From Dicyema japonicum (lineage: Eukaryota; Animalia; Dicyemida): a stretch of DNA of 64,000 nt. The notes under the pieces were generated by a model. The model did no database searches and was not told the DNA's origin. It was given only the letters and a program-made list of their open reading frames with translations. The translations under genes were made by a program, and so were the position numbers. Below are positions 1,365 through 62,200 of the stretch, piece after piece; the stretch's first letter is position 1; each line of letters begins with the position of its first letter. The stretch spans positions 1,904,834 to 1,968,833 of the forward strand of contig RDEW01000002.1 of the NCBI GenBank assembly GCA_011109175.1. The letters run 5' to 3'.

Positions 1365-1925
1365 GCTTTATGTTCAAGTCCCTTGTGAGAGTCGAAAAGA
1401 CCTATTCAAGAAGATTTGAAACAAAGACGGGCACTCCACAGGATACTCCCTTTTTCTCTACTTTTCACAATTTATTTGGAACCCGCTATGAGGGAACTTA
1501 GGCCGTGGTACCAAGGAGAGACAGAAGAAGTGATGTAGACCTAATTTCTGAAGACAAAGAGGTCATGGAACACCTATTAGAAAAAGCATCAGATGTACTA
1601 TGGAGGTAGTTTCTTACTGTGAAAAGAAAGAAAACAGAACTCAGAGATAAAAAGGATGAGCAACGTCCAAGAAGAGAAGTGGCGACAAGTAAAGAACTCG
1701 AATCACATATGGGAAATAGCTAAGATATCTAAAGTTAGATAACTCTAGCCAATGCTGAGTTATATAAACTGAAGAATCTATGGCTCAAACCAAGAGTATA
1801 GAACACAAAAATGAGAAACCAATTATAAGACTCATTCATAAAACCCGTACTTTTAATAACGATGGAATTTGGACGACCTCATCAGCGGATAGAGAAAGAT
1901 TGAGTTGGAGGTCATTATGAAAGAT
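1365..1925 (+). mobile_element. Degenerate RTE-like LINE RT fragment
   Basis: Frameshifted KTGTPQ...LFTIYLE..MREL segment, similar at DNA level to 45760-46200. Confidence 0.7.
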
Positions 1926-1926
1926 T

Positions 1927-3697
1927 GAAAATATTTTTTTAGAAATTAATGATAAAATGAATTTTAAACAAAAGCAATAAATCATTGATTTATATAATTA
2001 AATTTAATATAGAAATTGCCGAATTGGCTGAAGAGTCAGTTGGCAGTAATCGTTGAAAGAATGATCACCCACAAAAGGAAAAGGGAAATCATGATCCCAT
2101 AAAAGGAAAAAGGGATATTTTTATATTTTTATTAATGAAAAAAAATTTTTTAAGAAATTAATGATAAAATAAATTTTAAACAAAACCAATAAATCATTGA
2201 TTTATATAATTAAATTTAATATAGAAATTGCCGAATTGGCTGAAGAGTCAGTTGGCGAAACTTTGAAAGAATGATCACCCACAAAAGGAAAAGGGAAATC
2301 ATGATCCCATAAAAGGAAAAAGGGATATTTTTTATATTTTTATTAATGAGAAAATATTTTTTAAGAAATTAATGATAAAAAAATTTTAAACAAAAGCAAT
2401 AAATCATTGATTTATATAATTAAATTTAATATAGAAATTGCCGAATTGGCTGAAGAGTCAGTTGCGGAAACTTGAAAGAATGATCACCCACAAAAGGAAA
2501 AGGGAAAATCATGATCCCATAAAAGGAAAAAGGGATATTTTTATATTTTTATTAATGAGAAAATATTTTTTAAGAAATTAATGATAAAATAAATTTTAAA
2601 CAAAAGCAATAAATCATTGATTTATATAATTAAATTTAATATAGAAATTGCCGAATTGGCTGAAGAGTCAGTTGGCGGAAACTTTGAAAGAATGATCACC
2701 CACAAAAGGAAAAGGGAAAATCATGATCCCATAAAAGGAAAAAGGGATATTTTTTATATTTTTATTAATGAGAAAATATTTTTTAAGAAATTAATGATAA
2801 AATAATTTTAAACAAAACCAATAAATCATTGATTTATATAATTAAATTTAATATAGAAATTGCCAAATTGGCTGAAGAGTCAGTTGGCGGAAACCTTGAA
2901 AGAATGATCACCCACAAAAGGAAAAGGGAAAATCATGATCCCATAAAAGGAAAAAGGGATATTTTTTATTTTTTATTAATGAGAAAATATTTTTTAAAAA
3001 ATTAATGATAAAATGCATTTTTAAAGAAAGACAATAAATTTATTGATTTAAATAATTATAATATAGAAATTGCCCGAATTGGCTGAAGAGTCAGTTGGCG
3101 GAAACTTTGAAAGAATGATCACCCACAAAAGGAAAAGGGAAAATCATGATCCCATAAAAGGAAAAAGGGATATTTTTATTTTTATTAATGAGAAAATATT
3201 TTTTAAGAAATTAATAAAATGCATTTTAAAGAAAGACAATAAATCATTGATTTAAATAATTAAATTTAATATAGAAATTGCCGAATTGGCTGAAGAGTCA
3301 GTTGGCAGTAATGTTGAAAGAATGATCACCCACAAAAGGAAAAGGGAAAATCATGATCCCATAAAAGGAAAAAGGGATATTTTTTATTTTTATAATGAGA
3401 AAATATTTTTATAAATTAATGATAAAATGCATTTTAAAGAAAGACAATAAATCATTGATTTAAATAATTAAATTTAATATAGAAATTGCCGAATTGGCTG
3501 AAGAGTCAGTTGGCGGAAACTTTGAAAGAATGATCACCCACAAAAGGAAAAGGGAAAATCATGATCCCATAAAAGGAAAAGGGATATTTTTTATTTTTTA
3601 TTAATGAGAAAATATTTTTTATAAATTAATGATAAAATGCATTTTAAAGAAAGACAATAAATCTTTGATTTAAATAATAAAATTTAATATAGAAATT
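1927..3697. repeat. ~210-bp tandem repeat array, left arm (8 full units plus flanking partial units)
   Basis: AGAAATTGCC(G)AATTGGC unit starts at 2011, 2223, 2433, 2643, 2855, 3065, 3273, 3481; a ninth (3691) is cut by the RTE. Period 208-212. Confidence 0.97.
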
Positions 3698-6600
3698 TGT
3701 TGAGGTGGTGACGTCCCTCTACTTGCACTATGTCTTCTTCGTATTGCTTACCAGTTTCTCCCCTCACTCTTGGATCCCTCAACTGCCGAGGCCTCAATCA
3801 GTGCTACAAGAAACAACAATTGGCGCGTGATCTGAGTAAATACAACATCTCTGTCTGTTGTTTGCAAGAGACGAAAATAACCGAACAATCTGCTGAACTG
3901 TTTCAGAATTTTTACCTTTTTACCCTCACACCAGACTGCAGGCACTATGGGCTCGGATTTGCTGTTCATCGGCACTTGTTTCACTGTGTCTCAAGAGTAT
4001 GGGCAGTATCTGACCGTGTCGCGGTGTTACAAATCAAATGCGGAAACAAACTCAACTCAGTGATCTCCATCATAAATGTATATGCCCCAACCGGAGCACG
4101 TGTATCAACGAATATCGAAGAACTGGATACGTTTTACTCTACTCTCACAAGTGTGTACAACTCACTTTCATCCTCTTACTTTCTTTTTATCGCCGGGGAC
4201 TGGAACGCCAGGGCCGGAAAAGCAAGACCTGGTGAAACGTGTATTGGATCCCACGGTAGAAACCGCCGTAACATCCCCGGAGAGGCATTAATACAATTTT
4301 GCACGGCATTCAACCTACTCATATGCAACACTTGTTTCAAGCACCCGGCAAGACACAGGACCACGTGGGTTGGTACCAGAAAAGGCAAATCTGGAAACAC
4401 AGTCAATATATACAATCAGATCGACTATATTATCTGCAAGCAACATCAGAAGGCCCTCCTACAGGACTCGAGATCTTACGGTGGACTTGAAACAAGTAGC
4501 GATCATAAACTTGTGGTCGCCCGGCTAGTACTTAAAAGAATCCATGGAATACACGGGAAACACAAAGGCCTTACCTCAGTACGTTTCGACACTGAGAGGT
4601 TACGCTACGAAGAATCCACCAAATGTCGTTATAGTGCAGTTCTGAGAGATAGCATCAACAGTATTAACCAAAATCAGCCGACAAACAGCTTATGGGATGA
4701 AATAGTGGTTGCTATCCAAAACACAGCCTTTAGTGTGCTTGGTCACATCACCAAATCTCGTCACAAACAATGTAATCCGGATATCGGACAACTCTCTGTA
4801 ACACAGAAAGAGCTCAGACTCCGGATGGAAAACACAAACGCTCCGGAAGATATCAAAGTACTGCGCACCCAGAGAGGGAGAGTCTTAACGAAGATCAAAC
4901 AAATACAAAGATTCCTTGCCAAAAATGAAGCTGAGGAGAAAATCTCAGACATATTAAAGTACAAGAACGGACCAAGAATGTTCAAAGCAATCCGGCTTCT
5001 TAGCAGAGAAAACTGTCCAATTTCGTTAACTGTCCATGACAACCTTGGTCACGACGTTATCGGGACCATTAACAAAGCAAACGTTCTGGCATCCCATTTT
5101 GACCTTATGTTCAACAAACAGGACGCGGCTGACCAAGCAATGAAATCTCGGAAGTCTTACAAGTACACTCTAACTAGCCCTATTACCATATCCGAAACTC
5201 AACAAGCTATTAAAAAATTAAATACCGGAAGATCTGCCGGACCAGACTTCATTACTGCAGAACTTTTACAATACGGCCCGGAGGAGCTAATTGAAATGAT
5301 TACTAACATTTTCAACCGGTCTCTCGAGGGTGCAGATGAACTGGAACTGGGAAAAGGGTGGCTAATTCCACTACAAAAACCGGGAAAAAGTAAAGGCCCC
5401 CCTCACAACTTCAGACCTATTATACTCCTAACCTCCATACGAAAAACATTATCCCTCATTGCTTTAAACCGAATAAAGGAGAGGGTGAACATATTTCTTT
5501 CGGACGGCCAAAGTGGATTCCGGACGGGCAGGTCCACGGCTGACGTGGTATGGGGGCACAGGTGGTATTGTGCCCTGTGCCAAAAATACAAAAAATCTAT
5601 TTGAGATACTTGGTATCGACATGTCCCGTGCGTTCGACTCGGTGGACCGTGGAAAACTTATGGAAGTGTTGGAGAGTTTTCTACTGCCTGACGATGTCAA
5701 AATAATACACTTACTCATGCGGAACACTCAACTTGCCGTCAAAATTGGTGACTCTACCTCTAACTTTTTTTCGACCTCACGTGGAGTTCCACAGGGGGAC
5801 TCACTATCCCCGGTCCTCTTTATTGTCTACCTTGAGGCCGCACTAAGAGAGTTCAGACCCCTGGTTGGCAACAATTATAACGAGATAATCTACGCGGACG
5901 ACCTGGACTTTGTTTCTGAGGATATTCAAGTACTTCAACACATGCTTAACGTTCTTCCACACGTATTCTCGAAATGGTTCTTAACCGTTAACACCGATAA
6001 AACAGAGTTCACAACACTTACACGCAATGATCGAAGATCGGACGAGTCTTGGAGAAAGCAAAAGAAGGTGGGTTCGCTTCTCGGGGACTCAGAAGATGTT
6101 TCTCGGAGGAAAATCCTCGCAATGTGTGCACTAAAGAAAGTATCGAATATGTGGGGTCATAAGAAGAGGATGGGATTAAACACCAAACTCAGAATATATA
6201 AGGCTTTTGTCATCCCCGTCCTGACCTACAATTCAGGCACTTGGGGAATCTCTAAACAAGAGATGGACCGTCTTGACGCTTTCCACAGGACACAATTGAA
6301 ATCAGTAATCAAGATCAAGTGGCCTAAGAAGATCTCAAACAATGACCTCTACTCGAAGTGCAAATCTGGTATACTATCCGAGGAGATCTTCAGATCAAGA
6401 TGGAGTCTCTTTGGACATATCTTACGTCTAAATGCTCAAGTACCCGCGAATATCGCCATGGAAAACTACTTAATGCATACGGGAGCCGGTTTCCGTGGAA
6501 GACCAAGAGTCACACTCCCAACTATTTTGAATGGAGACCTGTCGGCTGTGGGACTGAAGCTCACTTCCGCAGACGACCTAGATACCTTAAGGGAACTGGC

Positions 6601-6715
6601 ACGAAGTAGAGGGTCCTGGAAAAGGCTGATAGAGAGGATGGCTAGAAATACGGCACAAGGGAGGCTTGATTAATTTTATGACTTCTCGGGAGTGCTTTAA
6701 ATAAAATAATAAATA
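3698..6715 (+). mobile_element. Full-length RTE-type non-LTR retrotransposon (3018 bp)
   Basis: Single APE-RT reading frame with no ORF1, ~30-nt 5' UTR, short 3' UTR with TAA/TAAA-rich tail. 9-bp TSD ATAGAAATT at 3689-3697 and 6716-6724. Confidence 0.92.
3730..6673 (+). CDS. APE endonuclease-reverse transcriptase, split by one +1 indel near 5600
   Basis: APE motifs LNCRGL, CLQETK, GDWNA, NQIDYI, SDH. RT motifs GPDFI, FRPI, QSGFR, DMSRAFD, GVPQGDSLSP, YADD. Removing one T in TCTATTTGAG gives KKSIEILGIDMSRAFD, as in the paralog at 58021-58833. Confidence 0.93.
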
Positions 6716-8418
6716 ATAGAAATTGCCGAATTGGCTGAAGAGTCAGTTGGCGGAAACATTGAAAGAATGATCACCCACAAAAAGGAAAAGGGAAAATCAT
6801 GATCCCATAAAAGGAAAAAGGGATATTTTTTATTAATGAGAAAATATTTTTTATAAATTAATGATAAAATGCATTTTAAAGAAAGACAATAAATCATTGA
6901 TTTATATAATTAAATTTAATATAGAAATTGCCGAATTGGCTGAAGAGTCAGTTGGCGGAAACTTTGAAAGAATGATCACCCACAAAAGGAAAAGGGAAAA
7001 TCATGATCCCATATAAAAGGAAAAAGGGATATTTTTTATTTTTATTAATGAGAAAATATTTTTTATAAATTAATGATAAAATGCATTTTAAAGAAAGACA
7101 ATAAATCATTGATTTATATAATTAAATTTAATATAGAAATTGCCGAATTGGCTGAAGAGTCAGTTGCGGAAACTTTGAAAGAATGATCACCCACCAAAAG
7201 GAAAAGGGAAAATCATGATCCCATAAAAGGAAAAAGGGATATTTTTTATTTTTTATTAATGAGAAAATATTTTTTATAAATTAATGATAAAATGCATTTT
7301 AAAGAAAGAAAATAAATCATTGATTTATATAATTAAATTTAATATAGAAATTGCCGAATTGGCTGAAGAGTCAGTTGGCAGTAATGTTGAAAGAATGATC
7401 ACCCACAAAAAGGAATAGGGAAAATCATGATCCCATAAAAGGAAAAGGGATATTTTTTATATTTTTATTAATGAGAAAATATTTTTTATAAATTAATGAT
7501 AAAATAAATTTTAAACAAAACCAATAAATCATTGATTTATATAATTAAATTTAATATAGAACGTGCTCAATTGGCTGAAGAGTCTGTTGGCGGTCATCAT
7601 GAAAGTTTGAAATCCCAAAAAAGGAAAAGGGAAAATCATGATCCCATAAAAGGAAAAAGGGAATTTTTTATATTTTTATTAATGAGAAAATTTATTTTTA
7701 GAAATTAATTTTTTTAAGCAAATTAAAAACAATTATTTAACAAAAAACAAATGTTAGTTGAGGAATCCGGCTGCGTTGATGAGAACGAGTTCCCTCGGAG
7801 TATAGCCATTCCAATCTCTTGTCTCAGCTATAACCATTATCGTTGTTTTCTTTTTTTGGCAAGCATTCCTCTTAGTTCGCGTAAAAACTCAGCTGTCATT
7901 GGACCTCATTAGTCAGAAATTAATAATAAATTATATTTTAAAACAAAACCAATTAATCATTGATTTATATAATTAATTTTAATATAGAAAGTAGCCTAAT
8001 TGGCTTAAGAGTTAGTTGGCGGTGATTGTGAAAGATTGATATCCCAAAAAAGGAAAAGGGAAAATCATGATCCCATAAAAGGAAAAAGGGATATTTTTTT
8101 ATATTTTTATTATTATTATTATTATAAGCAACTACATAGAATCATATAAACTATAATTCTATTCGTGCCGCGTCCGAACAATCCTCATAATTAGCCTTTC
8201 CCATCCCTCCTGTCCGATGCCAAGTTCCGCAGACTACTAAGGTCTTCACCGTCCTTTAGTTGTCTGGTTACTGATCTAAGGTCACCATTAAGGACTTCCC
8301 GATATTTTTATTAATGAGAATATATTTTTCAGAAATTAATGATAAAATAAATTTTAAACAAAACCAATAAATCATTGATTTAGATAATTAAATTTAATAA
8401 AAAAAATTGCCCAATTGA
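6716..8418. repeat. ~210-bp tandem repeat array, right arm (edge units diverged and interrupted)
   Basis: Unit starts at 6718, 6923, 7135, 7346, 7558, 7986, ~8403. Unrelated insert at ~7745-7915. Confidence 0.95.
8113..8301 (-). mobile_element. 5'-truncated RTE copy (~190 bp) inserted in an array unit
   Basis: Encodes ..VLNGDLRSVTRQLKDGEDLSSLRNLA.., ends in a (TAA)n tail. TSD ATATTTTTATTA at 8101-8112 and 8302-8313. Confidence 0.85.
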
Positions 8419-9437
8419 CGATCTTATTCAGAGCCTTGTGCCTGCAGATCTGCCAGCGCGCCATAGCTGTCTATTATGTCACATGTGCCAAACGATACCT
8501 ATTGGCTGCCTGTTACATTAACCTTAAACCAAGATTTACTTCAATTAATTTTATAAATGATTTATTAACTACAAAAAATTAAATTTAAGTAACTTTTTTA
8601 AGTCTGCTCATTAATACACTCGATATTTCTCCTTTCGAATTTTTTATCTATCAAATTAAGCTATTTAAAACTACCTCAAACGCGATTATTCGATAAAATA
8701 TTAATTATTTCTGCAACTGGATAATACTGAGATTCAAACTTATCCAGTCGCAATGAGGGATTTGTTCCAAAGTTTTTTTAGCCCGAACCTATTTATTAAT
8801 GTTTTTAATTCATACTTTATCTCCCATGTTGGAAGTATATTTAGGCGAAACAAAGATCTTAAGTTTTGACACACTTCTTTACCTGACTTATTATAGAGTG
8901 GTCGTGCAAATGCAAATTTATAAAATAAAAAAAACTAACCTACTATAAATGTCAATGACCGTTAAAATCCATTTAAAATTTTCGTTTAATGTTGAAAATT
9001 TTTTCAGATCTATCATGTCTATTTGAAAAACGTTCATTTGGACAAGAAGCGAACACATGGTGATTTATATCTCCAATCTACAATTAAAAAAAATCACGAA
9101 ACTTTTAAAGGACGCGAAAATTTGCAGACTTCACAATTTCGAATGACTTTTCTGATAATCTCATTCTTTACAGTGATCTTTGTCGACATTCATACTCAAT
9201 TTTATTGACTCCTCCGTGTGAAAAACACGTGCAACGATTTCGCAACATGCTCCATTTCGGTTTCATTATCCAGGATATGACTAACTTGGAATCAGTTAAT
9301 TTAAGATACAGTCCTAAAATTATTGCAAATTTACAATACCTGTCATTGATAATGGAAAAAATTCTTTATCTTCTTTATAAGACTATATTTTCGGTGCCTC
9401 GGAAGATTTTCGGGAAATTTATCACGCAAAGCATCTT

Positions 9438-10204: not shown

Positions 10205-10310
10205 ATATACAATTAACACGACAGATGTGACCAAAACTCTGATCTCCATATAAAGGAAGAGGCATCAGGGTCCCATAAAAGGAATGGGTTTTTTTATTAA
10301 TTAAAAATTA
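10205..10310 (+). repeat. Dispersed relative of the array module (hairpins 2-3 plus T-run)
   Basis: CTGATCTCCATATAAAGGAAGAGGCATCAGGGTCCCATAAAAGGAATGGGTTTTTTT; shares upstream TACAATTAACACG with the copy at 29840. Confidence 0.7.
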
Positions 10311-25707: not shown

Positions 25708-26529
25708 TATTTTTCAAATATATTTTATTTTTGACATTTAAATATTTAACTTTTATATTTATTTGAAATAATATATTAAATAAAATATTTATTTAATAAA
25801 TTAAATGTTCCTCAAAATGTCTCAATGGTTCAGGTCCTGTAGGCCTTAGACAAAATGATATCTATCTTTCCTGGGCAATCTATCTTTCCTTGACTACCTG
25901 GTATGATTTCTCTAGCGACCACAAATCTCGGAAGAGCTCTTTTTGTTACTTGGCTTTCTAAAAAATTTAAAATTATTGGGATGTGGACTGGTTTGGTCTC
26001 ACACATATGGAATGAATGGTTGTCTATTCTGCAACCAGACAATTTTGGAAGCTGGGTTTTTCATCTCTTCACTACAAGAGCTTCAATTAGAATCTACACT
26101 TGACCCTATTCAATAAAGAGGGACTCTATCTTTTCTGTAATAACTCAAGATTCTCAACTAAGACTAACCACGTGCAACATTGGAGTCGCTTATGTGTACA
26201 AAATTCGGAAGTGGTCCAAAGAAAACGAAATACTTATGAAAAGTTAGTTCGGCGGTTAATTTGTCAGAAGGTTGAGGCTATAATGGAGCTCTGGTGAACT
26301 AGGCGTAGCTCTAGTTCACTTGATGTCTTCATTCTTCAACTTTTAGAAACCATTGGATGAAACCTCTCGTTCCATTTTTTGAAACAGGAGTAGCTTTGAG
26401 GAAATCTCCGAGATTTCTATGATCCCATTAAAGGATAAGTGATTTTTTATTAATGAGAAATTTTGTTTTCAGAGGAATAAAGAAGGCGTCAAAGAATGAC
26501 TGATTTTTTAGTCTCAAATTTAATGTTTA

Positions 26530-29839: not shown

Positions 29840-30035
29840 TACAATTAACACGGGAGTAAAGTGGCCAATTGGCTGGGGAGTCAATTGGCAACATTGCTAT
29901 CATGCCTGATCTCCACATAAGGAAATGGCGTCGGGGTCCCATAAAAGAAAAAGGGATGTATTTTTTATGATAAATTATTTAGTCTCAAAATTAACGTTCA
30001 CAAAGGGCAGTTTTGATTTAATTGACAAAATGACT
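29840..30035 (+). repeat. Dispersed monomer related to the tandem-array module
   Basis: Hairpin GCCAATTGGCT-GGGG-AGTCAATTGGC (29864-29889), then GTCCC..GGGAT hairpin. Its 3' flank also occurs at 27255-27315. Confidence 0.75.
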
Positions 30036-54229: not shown

Positions 54230-57200
54230 TCAGTCATATATTTTTGTGATAAACTCGGAAAATAATTTAGTATAAAGTCTGGTTATTGTCAACGTCCAGT
54301 GTTTTTAGCCTTTATGGTTTTAATAATTATATTCGCCAGCCCCAACCGAGTTGTCATATAAAATTCATTTTCTTCGTCCTCAAGACAGCAATTAAAACTA
54401 TTTTTAGGCCCTGTCTCCACAATTTGTCAAAGTGCTCGATTGCGGATAGCTTCAATAAGGAGGATCGTGAAATCTGCATTGCCTACGAAGGACTTGCATA
54501 CGTCATCATGGGTCGGATAAATTGTTCATAAATCATGGCAAGGCTACCAGTATGTCTCAGTATGTCACTTTTAAAATTCTCATTTTCCTCAGAGCAGAAG
54601 TTACTATGTTCTCAAGATAAAGGTGACTCCCAGAATCTTCGGTGTTTGTTAATAAAAATAGCCTCGTTCATCATAAAGATTTTTGGTTCGACACAGAGCT
54701 GTCTTTGGTAAGTGGTAAACAGCGTGACAAAGGACTTTGTTGCTGATGCGTCGACTCTCCGCTTCGAGAGCCATAGTTCCAGCTTGTCAAGCATTTGTTG
54801 GACTGAGTCGCTGATTGAATGCTTCTGTCCTTGGAAGCAAGAATGATATCGTCGACATAGGAGAGGATTAGACAGTTTTCATTACAGGTTTGTGGCATGT
54901 CGTTTATGTAGAGATTGAAAAAAGATGTCGATGGTAGGGATCCTTGAGGGACTCCATTTGGTATGAGACGGGATTTTGATTTTATGTTATTGCAAATCAC
55001 TTGTCCACGTCTCCACTTGAGAAGTTGGCAATCCATAGTTTTATGTTTGGGTGGATGCATGTATCGTAAATTTTCTCAGTAAGGAGTTTTCTTGAGACTG
55101 TTTCGAGAGCCTTTGTTACATCAACAAAGACCAAGACTGTTCGTTGGTGTGGTTTAGTGAAATTGAATCCCTCCGCAATAAACTGGCACAGGGACGTTAG
55201 GTATGTTGCAGTGGAGTGTTTAGCCTGGAATCCTTGTTGGAAGGGAGAGAGCGGGATGTAGTCTTTGATATTTATGAACATAGGATCGAGATTGGTCTGT
55301 AGGAAAAGGGGTCATTTTCGGATTTTCCTGGGGTCATCGGTTTGATTGATGATCTCTTCCAGACATACGGAATAGTGTTCATATTTATTGATATTGTGAA
55401 ATGTAGCGATTAAATCTAAAGCAAGAGGTTCTAGATGCTTTAGTTTAGAAATATTTCTGGACCTCGGTCTTTGGAGTTTCGGGTTTTTGATATTCCCACT
55501 GGACGTCCTTCGCCGTAAATATGGTCCGCACGTATGATCCTTCGGTTTTATTCGTTTAAGAGTACTTGGTGTTCTTTGGAATGGTTTTATGTGCTATGGA
55601 AGCATAGTAATTCATTGAGGTGTTTGGTTTGCAATGATATCCCATTTTGCGGTTCATCAAAAGACCTTTTGATAGACTTGATTTTGTTCCAGACCTTCTG
55701 TACTGACGGATTTTCTGTTAGAGCTTTTGATAGTTCTGTCCAGCTTTTCTCGTTTTTTACTGATATATTTGTTAATCTCCTTGTTTAGTGTACGAATTCT
55801 TATTATATCTCCTTCGACGGTATGTTCTTTTTCTTTAGTTTCTTTCTTTGACTAAATGTTTGGCTGTTGAATTGAATCGCCTGTTCGTCGGTTGTCTTCC
55901 CATTTTCTAGCTTCTTGACTGAGCGAAGAGAACTGCTTTATGATGTTGTTTAATGATGATGCAGCATGTAGTTTTGATGACTTGATCTGCATGTCAATAC
56001 TGACGGATTTTCTTTTAGGGCTTTTGATAGTTCTGTCCAGCTTGCAAATCTTTGCCAGTCGCCTGTTCGTCGGATGTCTTCCCATTTTCTAGCTTCTTGA
56101 CTGAGCGAAGAGAACTGCTTTATGATGTTGTTTACTGATGAGGCAGCATGTAGTTTTGATGACTTGATCTGCATGTCAATACTGACGGATTTTCTTTTAG
56201 GGCTTTTGATTGTTCTGTCCAGCTTGCAAATCTTTGCCAGTCAGCGAGGTTATAATTTATCAAAGTAGGGAATGACCCTTAATTTGATCTTGTTTTTATT
56301 TGTAAAATGATCGGATTATGATCACTCATCGTTTCGTATTTCACTCTCCATGAAATTGAAGAAGCCGGAAGGGAAGACGCGATTGAAACGTCAGGAAATG
56401 ATGGTCTAGCATTTTGTCTTGGGGGTTCTTGTGTGAAAATTAGGGTCGTTTAGGATGCAAAATGTTCCCAAGTATTCGATTAGCATGTCTCCCCGTCTGA
56501 TTGACGTCTGACCTCTCAACCAGAGCGGGTGTTTTGTATTTAGGTCACCGCAAAGAAGAACGTCCTTTAGTGAGCTGATCGACGAAAGTTTCGGGCAAGT
56601 GGCTGATGATAAAAAATAGATATGAATTGATCAGAGTAAGACGTAACTTTGGGAGTTGGATTTTTGTGGCCAGAATAGAGCGGGTGTTTTGTATTTAGGT
56701 CACCGCAAAGAAGAACGTCCTTTAGTGAGCTGATCGACGAAAGTTTCGGGCAAGTGGCTGATGATAAAAAATAGATATGAATTGATCAGAGTAAGACGTA
56801 ACTTTGGGAGTTGGATTTTTGTGGCCAGAATTTCGATACTTTTATGGTTTTGGAGACGGTTGTAGACGTATTTGGTGATATCTTCATAAGGGATCCCGTT
56901 TTGTATGATAGTTAGTAACCCTCCCCCAAGTTTTCCACATCTATCTTTGGGGACAACTGAGTATCCAGGAAATTTTGGAATTATGTTCGCACTTCTGAGT
57001 TTGGATTCTTGTAATAGAAGGACGTCAATTCTAGATTTTTCCATAATGTCTCTGACTTCGATGATCTTATATCTCATCCCGTGTATATTCATTTGCATGG
57101 TCTTTAAAGGTCCGGGGTTCGATTCGACGCCCCCACATAGAGACAGTCCGTCCTTGTAACCTAGGGCAGTGTAACTCTTTTCTTTAAAATGTCTCCAGTT

Positions 57201-57255
57201 TGGTGAGTTACGTGACATCCAACCAACCACAAAACACGGCGTTTGTAGAGTCTTC
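54230..57255 (-). mobile_element. Near-complete degenerate APE-RT LINE (Jockey/I-like) with an N-terminal 2A-like motif and two internal tandem duplications
   Basis: ESNPGP-LKTMQMNIHG..LLQESK (APE); QQGFQAKHSTAT, GVPQGS, YVDD, FIRPMMTYASP (RT and C-terminus). Confidence 0.8.
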
Positions 57256-57256
57256 T

Positions 57257-59545
57257 TTTATTATTATAGGCACGTACGCGATGCCAAGATCATGACAAAG
57301 CATGTGCAACACGAAAAGTTAACAATCTAATTAACGTCGCCCATCTTTTTCGATCCGTTGCCATGTTCCGTAGCATATCTAGATCGTCCCAATCTTTAAG
57401 GCACTTTCCAATCCTCTTGAGATCTTCATCTAGAATAACCGGCAGTGTTGTTCTCTGACGGCCTCGGAAACAAGAAGCTTCTAAGACAAAATACTCCTCC
57501 ATTGCTATGTTGGCAGGGGTTCCCATATCGTGGCGGAGTATGTGTCCAAAGAGCCTCCATCTTGAATCAGTAATATCACATGATATTGGCTTAGTTCCTG
57601 TTCTCTTGTATAAGATTTCGGACGGCATTTTGAAAAAGCTTCGAGAAGAAAGGAGTGCTTGGAGATGATTTCTGTGAAAAAAATTCAACTTTTCGAGTTC
57701 CTGCCCTGTACATGCCCATGTACCGGCATTATATAATAGAATTGGGCTCACTAGGGCATTGTATAGTCTCATTCGAGTTTTAGGGTCAAGCCCTTTGTGC
57801 AGAAGCCAGGTCTCTTCATTTTGTTGAAAGCGACATTGGTTAGTGTCTTCCTTCGTGCTATATCTTGTGTCACCGAGTAGGGACCCTAGTTTTTTTGATC
57901 TACGCCAGTGCTCGTCGGTCCTTTCCTCACTTCTTTTTAGCTTTGTGATTTCGGTTTTGTTTGTGTTTACTTTTAATGACCACTCAGCCATTTTATCAGG
58001 CATTTTCTCCAAAAGTGCAATTANTTTAGGGTCAAGCCCTTTGTGCAGAAGCCAGGTCTCTTCATTTTGTTGAAAGCGACATTAGTTAGTGTCTTCCTTC
58101 GTGTTATATCTTCTGTGTCACCGAGAAGGGATCCTAGTTTTTTTGATCTACGCCAGTGCTTGTCGGTCCTTTCCTCACTTCTTTTTAGCTTCGTGATTTC
58201 GGTTTTGTTTGTGTTTACTTTTAATGACCACTCAGCCATTTTATCAGGCATTTTCTCCAAAAGTGCAATTAACTTTTTTTTGTTATTCGAAATAAAGTCC
58301 ACGTCGTCCGCATATGCTATTGTTCCTTCTCTGATATGAGGCTTCAAGTCTCGTAGAGCTGCCTCCAGATAAATAATGAACAAAATCGGGGATAATGGAT
58401 CTCCTTGAGGGGTACCAATTGTCGTTTCAAATGTCCTCGATAAAGCTTTCCCAGTCCTGACCATCAAACTCGTGTCCGTCAAGAGTGTCTTTACCATCCT
58501 AATCGTTGAGCTTTCCAAGAAGTGCTCCAGTATTTGCAGCAGCTTGTTCCTGTTGACGGAATCAAAGGCCTTTGACATATCAATCCCCAGAATGGTTGTC
58601 GTTATTTTAAATTTTTGAACAGTCGCACTTCTCCATTTGTGGCTCCATATAACATCTGACGTTGATCTCTTGCGGAAGCCACTTTGATAAGCCGACAGGT
58701 ACGGGTCTAGGCGTCCCTCCATTCTTTGAAGCGTAATATTGGCTAGTATCTTCCGTAATGTGTTGGTTAATACCACTGGTCTTAGGTTCTCAACTTTCCC
58801 CGATTTTTTGTTTGGCTTCTGTACTGGTATCAATAGTCCTTCTCAAGTGGCTCCTTTACTATACATTTCGTTTAGAATCCAGGCAATTATCATGTATAGC
58901 TTTTGAGTTCCATATTTGAAAAATTCACCATTTAAGCCATCTGGGTTGGGACTCTTATTGTCCGTCAGTTTGAAACTTGCTGTCATCACTTCTTCCAAAG
59001 TTATTTCTTCGTCTAATTTTCCCTGATCCGTGTTAATGATGAGTTTTGTGCCATTTTTTGATACGAATTGTGCTTCAAAAAAATCCGCTATAAATTCTGC
59101 AATTTCTTGTTGGTTAGCAATATGTTTTCCTTTTTCATCTCGTAAAATCAGTGTTTTCCTTGGTAGTTTTCTGATTTGTCCGACAGCTTCATAAAACTTC
59201 GCATTGTCTTTAAGGCCTTCGATTTTCTCTATTTTTGTTATTGTTTCGTTCTTTAATATTCAACGTGCAGCTTTTCTTATTTTCTTTTTGATGACTGTTC
59301 TTTCCTTTTGTAGCCGCTGTTTCGTATTTTTGTCATCTGTATTTAGACATTGTATCCATATCGCCTTTTGTTGATTTGCAAAGAGTTTCAAAGCGGTTGC
59401 TTCTTCAGTGGGTATTTTAGTTACGTAGTCCTCTTTCAGGTTACGTAGTCCTATATATCCGCAGCAATCATGATCTTCTGTTTGACCAAGGTCCACGCAA
59501 TTTGCGGTGCCAAATCTACTGATATTTCTTCCAATCCCTCATCGA
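57257..59545 (-). mobile_element. RTE-like LINE, 5' end lost in the assembly gap
   Basis: LGIDMSKAFD, GTPQGDPLSP, AYADDVD, RGRQRTTLP; (TAA)n tail at ~57257-57267. ~250 bp duplicated across the N at 58024. Confidence 0.9.
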
Positions 59546-61099: not shown

Positions 61100-62200
61100 G
61101 TTTAAAATGAAATATTTATTTTCAAAAGAAAAAAAGGAAAATGATTATAAATGTTAATAGAACACATATTCTACTAAATTGAATATATATTCTGTCGGAT
61201 CCATATTAAGTAATATTTGTTCTTGAACAAATCTCAATATATTCTCAGATAAAGCGATATATTTAGTTTTTCTAAGAATTTTTTCTCCATTTTGTAATCT
61301 TAAGAATTTAATCATTATGCCTTCTTCTTTTATCAATTTCTTTACAAAATTTCTTGGCGTCTTGTTTAGTGTCCCAAATGTATTTCTAAAAACGTTGTGC
61401 CAGCCTTCAATTGAGTTATTTGTCCGAGGTAAGTCCTCATATAAATTATCCAGATTATTCCAATAATTAATTGGAAATTTTGGAATTAATGCATTTTCTT
61501 GATTTCCAATATAATTGATCGAAAAATATAATGGATTTAGAATTTCAGGAAAATCTGATCTCGACACTATCCAATCAAAAGTGTTCTTTACAGTATGTGT
61601 AGGAATATAGGAGAGGCATTTCAACAGTTTTACAAATCTATCGTTAATTTTAAATCACATTTAACCTATTTATATCTTCATTGTTTATGTCGTTGAAAAT
61701 TCCTAGTTCCAATATTTTTTATTAATATTTTGTCCTAGATGGAACATGCAGCAATTTATCCGTGCGTTTGGAAATGATTTTTGAAAAGAGTTTATTGCTC
61801 CTTTTTCAAAATCTGAGACAATAACTCTTGGTTCTAAATCCGGAATGAGACGTTTAATTATTTGAAGCATTGTGTCATATTCATTTTCAGTTTTTGATGT
61901 TAAAAGACAGAATATTATTGGAATTACATGGTGATTAATTATTACCGAGATTGTGAATAATTGCTTCCAAGGAAAAGGGCAGACAAAAAAAGTCCCATCA
62001 ATAGACCATATTTTATGATTTTTTAATGGTGTCGTCATTTCAGAATTAAAAAAATACCCATATTTGGTGAAAAGTGTACATATTGATTTTTCAGCGAAAA
62101 TAGTTAGTCGGTGGAAATATATTTTATATTTAGTCGGTGAAAATACATCAAAAGTGAACCCCGTCGACATTATCGACGTTGCGTTGCCTTTCACGATTGC
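61100..62200 (-). mobile_element. Mutator (MULE) transposase remnant
   Basis: IDGTFFVCP, IVSDFEKGAINS, CMFHLGQ, PRTNNSIEGWH. ~50-bp direct repeats at 60945 and 61038 beside it. Confidence 0.88.

Follow-up and report, generated by a model that had tools for sequence, protein, structure and literature searches.

A candidate small non-coding RNA transcription unit in tandem arrays of the Dicyema japonicum genome

What is the tandem array of short, GC-richer modules that occupies positions 1,927 to 8,417 of a 64,000-nucleotide stretch of the genome of Dicyema japonicum? Dicyemids are extremely reduced animals, D. japonicum being a parasite of octopus, and to our knowledge essentially nothing has been described of their non-coding RNAs apart from the standard small nuclear RNAs (snRNAs). 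The published genome of this species comprises 67.5 Mb in 377 scaffolds, with 49% repeats and very short introns (PMC6736024). We analysed the whole stretch, hereafter the window (C112:1904834-1968833; contig RDEW01000002.1 of assembly GCA_011109175.1), and searched 67,542,437 bases in 377 contigs. An earlier note, made from the letters of the window, had described units of ~210 bp, each holding a module that folds into three hairpins (H1, H2 and H3) and ends in a T-run, and had suggested that the module encodes either a small RNA made by RNA polymerase III (Pol III) or an RNA resembling a spliced leader. Tandem Repeats Finder (TRF) and the fold of the module at 2650-2755 bore out the description of the units.

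Our favoured answer, to which we give a probability of roughly 0.45, is that the unit is an undescribed, Dicyema-specific, multi-copy transcription unit with a Pol III-like arrangement of TATA and T-run, which would yield a small non-coding RNA of ~105 nt. We favour it because of the layout, in which the GC-richer module lies between a TATATAA at -27 and a T-run; because diversity is block-wise within the 46 array units and between the four array consensuses; because nine diverged copies in unrelated flanks keep the TATA block, the H1 core and H3; because three weak copies on contig C334 keep the upstream block at 18/19 positions; and because the fold is strand-asymmetric, the H1 hairpin persists in all lineages and one H2 pair covaries. 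The array itself consists of the following parts.

1927-3697, + strand: array segment 1, with 8.4 units of 210 bp arranged head to tail (94% matches, score 3008; TRF) and matches to the unit at 2018, 2230, 2440, 2650, 2862, 3073, 3280 and 3488 (BLAST, covariance model)
6716-7709, + strand: array segment 2, 4.7 units with a 212-bp period (93% matches in TRF; also found by BLAST and the covariance model)
7915-8112, + strand: a diverged unit with its module at 7994-8103, between two short insertions (BLAST, covariance model)
8302-8417, + strand: the last partial unit, the array stopping inside H1 (BLAST)

BLAST and the covariance model thus carry the array beyond 7709, the end of the second TRF segment, to 8417. 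The anatomy of a unit is described here on the reference unit at 2620-2830, whose module is at 2650-2755.

2616-2634, + strand: upstream conserved block ATTGATTTATATAATTAAA, a putative promoter, kept in 8-9 of the 9 diverged copies and exact in 33 copies
2650-2676, + strand: H1, a hairpin of 11 bp that has two G.U pairs, a single bulged base and a GAAG loop (minimum free energy (MFE) fold)
2677-2685, + strand: variable linker ('cassette'), 7-14 nt long in other copies, followed by a conserved GAAAG at 2686-2690
2692-2724, + strand: H2, a hairpin of 5 bp plus 3 bp with a 12-nt purine-rich loop (MFE fold)
2726-2748, + strand: H3, a 5-bp hairpin with a 13-nt purine-rich loop (MFE fold)
2750-2755, + strand: T6 run right behind H3, a putative Pol III terminator
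2765-2787, + strand: a post-terminator block of moderate conservation, TTAATGAG...TTTTTTAAG (diverged copies are 62% identical here, versus ~36% in the spacer beyond)

In the reference unit, TATATAA lies at 2623-2629, that is, at -27 from the module, and TAAATAA takes its place in some units, as the earlier note had observed. The single-stranded stretch between H1 and H2 in the MFE fold of this unit is 15 nt long. The linker within it is the most variable part of the whole unit, with ~30 variants among 67 units, and H2 and H3 read as an internal duplication of ~30 nt. A run of at least four T follows H3 in 58 of the 61 distinct module copies.

On the favoured reading, the TATA-containing block, which ends ~15 nt upstream of the module, would position the polymerase, most likely Pol III, and transcription would start at or near the G of GCCGAATTGG. 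The transcript would run through the conserved 11-bp H1, an unconstrained linker of 9-12 nt, H2 and then H3, the latter two with their purine-rich loops, and would stop in the T5-6 run right behind H3, so that it would end in an oligo-U tail. The RNA would belong to an abundant ribonucleoprotein (RNP), with the conserved H1 and H3 as putative protein-binding parts. U6-type Pol III genes have a TATA ~25-30 nt before the start, a terminator of at least four T and a shared proximal sequence element. The Dicyema unit resembles them in its TATATAA at -27, which is kept in diverged copies, and in its oligo-T run; it differs in that no proximal element was identified, the conserved block beginning only ~7 nt before TATATAA and so not reaching the position of a proximal element, about -55.

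The distribution of sequence change is tied to this layout. Per-site diversity (pi) was calculated over the 46 array units, and identity was recorded in the nine diverged copies, which are 70-80% identical overall and have flanks unrelated to the array units.

GAAAGAA: diversity 0.006
H1 core: diversity 0.024; identity 94%
H2: diversity 0.026
H3: diversity 0.039; identity 90% (H3 with the T-run)
Upstream 30 nt: diversity 0.07; identity of the TATA block (about -34 to -16) 84%
Post-terminator block: diversity 0.10
Spacer: diversity 0.18; identity about 36-54%
Linker of 9-12 nt after H1: diversity 0.28; identity 42%

Within arrays, the module is 5-8 times less variable than the spacer; the linker is about as unconstrained as the spacer, and the remaining module is constrained. 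The four array consensuses show the same partition, with differences at 9 of 59 linker and spacer columns versus 2 of 153 other columns. Conservation in such blocks, bounded by the TATA and the T-run, is what one would look for in a small gene served by an external promoter and closed by a terminator, and it would not be expected of a plain satellite.

The family extends well beyond the window. The genome contains 76 occurrences of the 21-nt H1 core at up to 2 mismatches, versus 0 for a reversed control, and the repeat is therefore present far beyond chance. A unit query gave 92 genome matches: C112 has them in three places, and the others are on C24, on the small contigs C107 and C370, or scattered. 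A covariance model was built from 24 diverse copies and 150 candidates were scored, so that its copy counts are lower bounds: at least 109 genome matches, comprising about 60 array-type copies (>93 bits) and at least 45 weaker, diverged and dispersed matches on some 15 contigs, some of them in small clusters. Segmental duplication relates several array loci to one another, and C107 mirrors the right edge of the array in the window. The 21-nt core was not found in the metagenome or prokaryote genome collections, and in the literature searched we found no paper relevant to the repeat sequence or to dicyemid small RNAs. We also considered that the array might form the 5' monomers of some larger element and rejected this because the array flanks are unrelated except at the duplicated loci.

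Three relic copies lie in the window outside the array.

10206-10301, + strand: a decayed copy that has lost exactly H1 and the linker (42.4 bits with the covariance model)
26347-26454, + strand: a relic copy
29863-29968, + strand: an old solitary copy, 72% identical (72.4 bits with the covariance model)

The copy at 29863-29968 retains H3 and the T-run, and its H1 is a perfect 11-bp stem with no bulge and a GGGG loop. Further plus-strand relic copies lie at L039 and L040 (C112 1.887-1.895 Mb). Throughout the TE-rich (transposable element-rich) region of ~48 kb at C112 1.887-1.935 Mb, every copy has the same (+) orientation. This suggests that transposable elements have broken up an old array, and it would fit a history in which the array was invaded by such elements and one stretch of it was re-amplified recently. 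Three distant members are on C334, at 807382-807527, 878960-879105 and 1001814-1001942. All three are weak matches (38-54 bits), and each lies 31-33 nt downstream of its 18/19-identical copy of the upstream TATA block, so that here the promoter-like block has survived better than the module itself.

Folding favours one strand of the module. The plus strand of an array unit folds at -24.5 kcal/mol (z = -1.9; 7 of 200 shuffles were as good), whereas z is -0.1 for the minus strand; z lies between -1.1 and -1.9 for diverged copies. Two conserved G.U pairs of H1 can pair on the plus strand only. H1 is a hairpin of 10-11 bp in every lineage, bulged in the arrays and unbulged in the oldest copies, and its changes among lineages include U.G to U-A and C-G to U.G. 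We found all the variants that the earlier note had listed: G, A, C or T at the bulge; GAAG, TAAG or GGGG in the loop; a C-to-T change that gives G.U in the unit with its module at 7994; a U.U mismatch in the unit at 7565; and, in the copy at 29863, U-A in place of U.G. The covarying pair is the outer pair of H2 (alignment columns 45-78), which is A-U in 8 copies, C-G in 5, U.G in 3 and unpaired in 8; the inner 3-bp helix of H2 is only 67% paired.

The earlier note went further and held that most changes in diverged copies keep the pairing, a claim that our counts do not sustain. Independent single changes in H1 comprise ~6 that preserve a pair versus 6-7 that disrupt one, with ~30% preserving changes expected by chance, and the pair-preserving share (about 6/13) is not clearly above chance. 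RNAalifold on the 24 copies retained H1 only, with 0 compensatory pairs. In the three-hairpin structure 88.4% of cells are paired, versus 87.0% in shuffles (3 of 500 as high), and the covariation score is 0.110 versus 0.096 in shuffles (17 of 500 as high). The support from covariation is weak, suggestive at most and not significant.

These structural results weigh against an RNA gene, and they do not stand alone. The H2 and H3 hairpins are weak and large-looped and resemble an internal duplication, and many array copies carry changes that break H1. Conservation runs ~25 nt past the T-run and ~15-20 nt upstream of the TATA, so that most of the 210-bp unit is conserved and not the putative RNA alone. 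Internal T4 runs are absent from the module, but only 9% of composition-matched shuffles have one; we therefore rejected their absence as evidence for Pol III, since base composition predicts the same. The module matches no Rfam family, and the upstream block was not found beside the genome's 13 U6 genes at up to 2 mismatches. Finally, the arrays lie in TE-rich, gene-poor DNA and tolerate insertions of transposable elements. The largest of these in the window is a long interspersed nuclear element (LINE).

3698-6715, + strand: LINE that interrupts the array and is no member of the repeat family (open reading frames (ORFs); Pfam Exo_endo_phos and RVT_1)

This young element of ~3 kb encodes an apurinic-type endonuclease and a reverse transcriptase. 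It was inserted exactly between -1 and +1 of one array unit and is flanked by a 9-bp target duplication, ATAGAAATT, at 3689-3697 and 6716-6724. Its position raised the idea of a site-specific retrotransposon that marks a conserved gene, which we rejected because about 30 other copies lie at unrelated sites and form a dispersed young family. The genome has more than 300 candidates for this family; of these, 40 were scored, and all 40 are at least 99% identical, sit at unrelated sites and bear (AAT)n-like tails, with no preference for a target. In the window copy the reading frame is broken at about 5513-5604. Two shorter insertions, both ~190-205 bp, lie within array units, at 7710-7914 with a 10-bp target duplication and at 8113-8301 with a 12-bp one. 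The former has a stretch beginning GTTGAGGAA, which matches at 81% identity a sequence just after a LINE tail in L066 and may be a shared 5' end of RTE-type elements; the latter is in minus-strand orientation with an (ATT)n tail. The LINE and the two insertions that cut the array, the duplication between H2 and H3 and the hypervariability of the linker all go beyond what the earlier note had described.

Given such a setting, could the unit be a plain satellite, specific to the species and perhaps seeded by a mobile element, that produces no discrete functional RNA? The conserved boxes would then result from recent amplification, homogenisation or protein binding at the DNA level, and the TATA and the T-run would be incidental to a high AT content. 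We consider this quite possible, at a little short of an even chance, and satellite and element-derived repeats without a discrete RNA are, taken together, nearly as likely as an RNA gene. The repeat is tandem, non-coding and restricted to the Dicyema genome in the collections searched; its location is TE-rich, with the LINE, the two insertions and same-orientation relics over ~48 kb; the array loci are partly segmental duplicates; and covariation falls short of significance. As read from the letters, the arms of H1 are two near-palindromic copies of CAATTGG, which also contain an inverted CCAAT box, so that binding at the DNA level is conceivable. A satellite accounts less readily for variation that is strongly block-wise rather than uniform, with the same blocks kept in independent old copies with different flanks, and for strand-specific folding with conserved G.U pairs. 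Moreover, the palindromes CAATTG, TGATCA and TCATGA are lost in the oldest copies, whereas the pairing of H1 is retained.

The other half of the earlier note's interpretation was that the array might encode a spliced-leader (SL) RNA. In that case an exon of ~17-20 nt ending ...GGCTGAAGA would be donated from the GA|GTCAGT donor to many messenger RNAs (mRNAs); as a dicyemid SL RNA, the unit would have a leader of ~17-20 nt ending ...GGCUGAAGA and a degenerate Sm site, and the leader end ...TTGGCTGAAGA(G) would join different mRNAs at AG acceptor sites. SL RNA genes are tandem and multi-copy and encode RNAs of ~50-140 nt, usually with the donor GU in stem-loop 1, and with an Sm site, RAU3-6GR. 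Like the SL RNA arrays of flatworms, rotifers, tunicates and nematodes, the Dicyema arrays are similar in size, unit length and RNA size (~60-75 tandem units of 210 bp, with the 76 intact cores and at least 109 model matches noted above), and a donor-like GT is paired in the 3' arm of the first stem, where the earlier note had correctly placed GTCAGT. Some linker variants read as Sm-like (AAUUUGA and AACUUUGA), and no study of dicyemid trans-splicing was found in the literature searched. Several observations speak against this reading. No canonical Sm site is conserved, as the earlier note had also seen, and no part of the unit varies more than its sole U-rich single-stranded stretch. The arrays conserve the donor GA|GTCAGT, but its +3 base is C; old copies read GTCAAT instead and pair better. 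The first 4-5 nt of the would-be leader are variable. The 3' end of the leader followed by non-intron sequence occurs at chance level (5 occurrences versus 5 and 4 for controls, with unrelated upstream sequence; 11 versus 11), no leader-bearing retrocopies were found genome-wide above chance despite very active LINEs, and no Rfam SL family matches. The unit is probably not an SL RNA gene, and we regard this reading as improbable. The earlier interpretation is thus partly supported: the layout from TATA to T-run, the constraint on the module relative to the spacer and the plus-strand folding agree with a Pol III-type RNA, and the spliced-leader variant fares poorly.

Dispersal raises a further alternative, a tandemly amplified non-autonomous mobile element resembling a short interspersed nuclear element (SINE) or a miniature inverted-repeat transposable element (MITE), in which the blocks would be kept by selection on master copies. 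The weaker model matches, some of them clustered on the ~15 contigs, are what such an element might leave behind, and an 11-nt inverted repeat, ATCATTGATTT / AAATTAATGAT, can be read near both ends of the conserved region. This inverted repeat is absent in the oldest copies, and the upstream TATA block travels with the copies, unlike in a Pol III SINE with an internal promoter. The solitary copies that were read show no target duplications and no A-rich or (AAT)n tails, the number of intact cores (76) is low for a mobile element, and no A or B box consensus and no transfer RNA (tRNA)-like fold were found. We consider a mobile element unlikely.

Schistosoma Sm-alpha and newt satellite 2 share with the Dicyema unit a tandem and dispersed distribution, a length of a few hundred bp and promoter-like elements, which raises the reading of a hammerhead-ribozyme satellite or retrozyme. 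Read from the sequence, CTGAAGAG...GAAAC in H1 and the linker resembles the hammerhead core CUGANGA...GAAA. The hammerhead core is not conserved in the Dicyema unit, in which GAAAC lies within the variable linker, is missing from most variants and, in most of those that bear it, is preceded by an extra G. No conserved cleavage site, stem I or stem III was found and no Rfam ribozyme family matched at E<=10. We rejected this reading, which appears to be refuted at the level of the conserved core and has hardly any probability left.

Does the module belong to any other known class of RNA? Consistent with the earlier note, which had recognised no known family, Rfam, with its snRNA, snoRNA, Y, vault, 7SK and SRP families, gave no match at gathering scores, neither in the window nor in the 83 kb surrounding the other arrays. 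At E<=10, 1800-8600 yielded SNORD42 (E=9.1) as the sole match, and ARAGORN found no tRNA. A C/D small nucleolar RNA was rejected because this SNORD42 match is the only one and its boxes are in the wrong order, and a tRNA-derived head or A and B boxes because ARAGORN was negative and the box matches were poor. U6 (13 genes), U4 (2) and U5 (15) were found elsewhere in the genome with good scores, dispersed and not arrayed; the module therefore replaces none of these snRNAs, and a divergent U4, U5 or U6 was rejected. We likewise rejected a cis-spliced micro-intron (24 nt, GT...AG across the linker) because the GAAAG acceptor is missing in the oldest copies.

The closest likeness is to small RNA genes that are tandemly arrayed with variable spacers, such as 5S ribosomal DNA (rDNA) and the repeats transcribed by Pol III, human snaR and Xenopus satellite 1/OAX, in which, as in Dicyema, a short, GC-richer module alternates head to tail with an AT-rich, faster-evolving spacer, and with which the Dicyema unit has in common dispersed, diverged, 'orphon'-like copies and a T-run after the last hairpin. 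The Dicyema unit differs from them in that it has no sequence or structure match (Rfam) and in that its putative promoter is an upstream TATA rather than internal boxes.

The rest of the window contains no clear host gene. All ORFs of at least 130 amino acids (1-64000) look like LINE-derived fragments or a transposase resembling that of Mutator-like elements (MULEs), the MULE-like ORF lying at 61154-62194 on the minus strand, and tandem duplications of 155-248 bp occur within LINE-like sequence at 55877-58271. Elsewhere in the genome, at L043:1043-1336 (C323), a 98-amino-acid ORF shows a weak GCN5L1/BLOC1S1 match (E=4e-4); a word search of a large protein collection found no relatives of it. 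Six ORFs of the genome were looked up by exact sequence in a large protein collection and none was found.

What the array means for dicyemids depends on which reading holds. If it is a satellite only, it still shows clearly how a repeat can combine strongly conserved boxes with a linker that drifts freely. If the spliced-leader reading were true, the annotation of dicyemid genes would change, and one phylum would be added to the animals with trans-splicing. If the unit is transcribed as we propose, Dicyema would possess a high-copy small RNA confined to its lineage and driven by a promoter type of its own, which would provide a handle on Pol III promoters in the dicyemid phylum and a candidate abundant RNP; the module may then represent a new, abundant Pol III RNP RNA specific to a reduced parasite.

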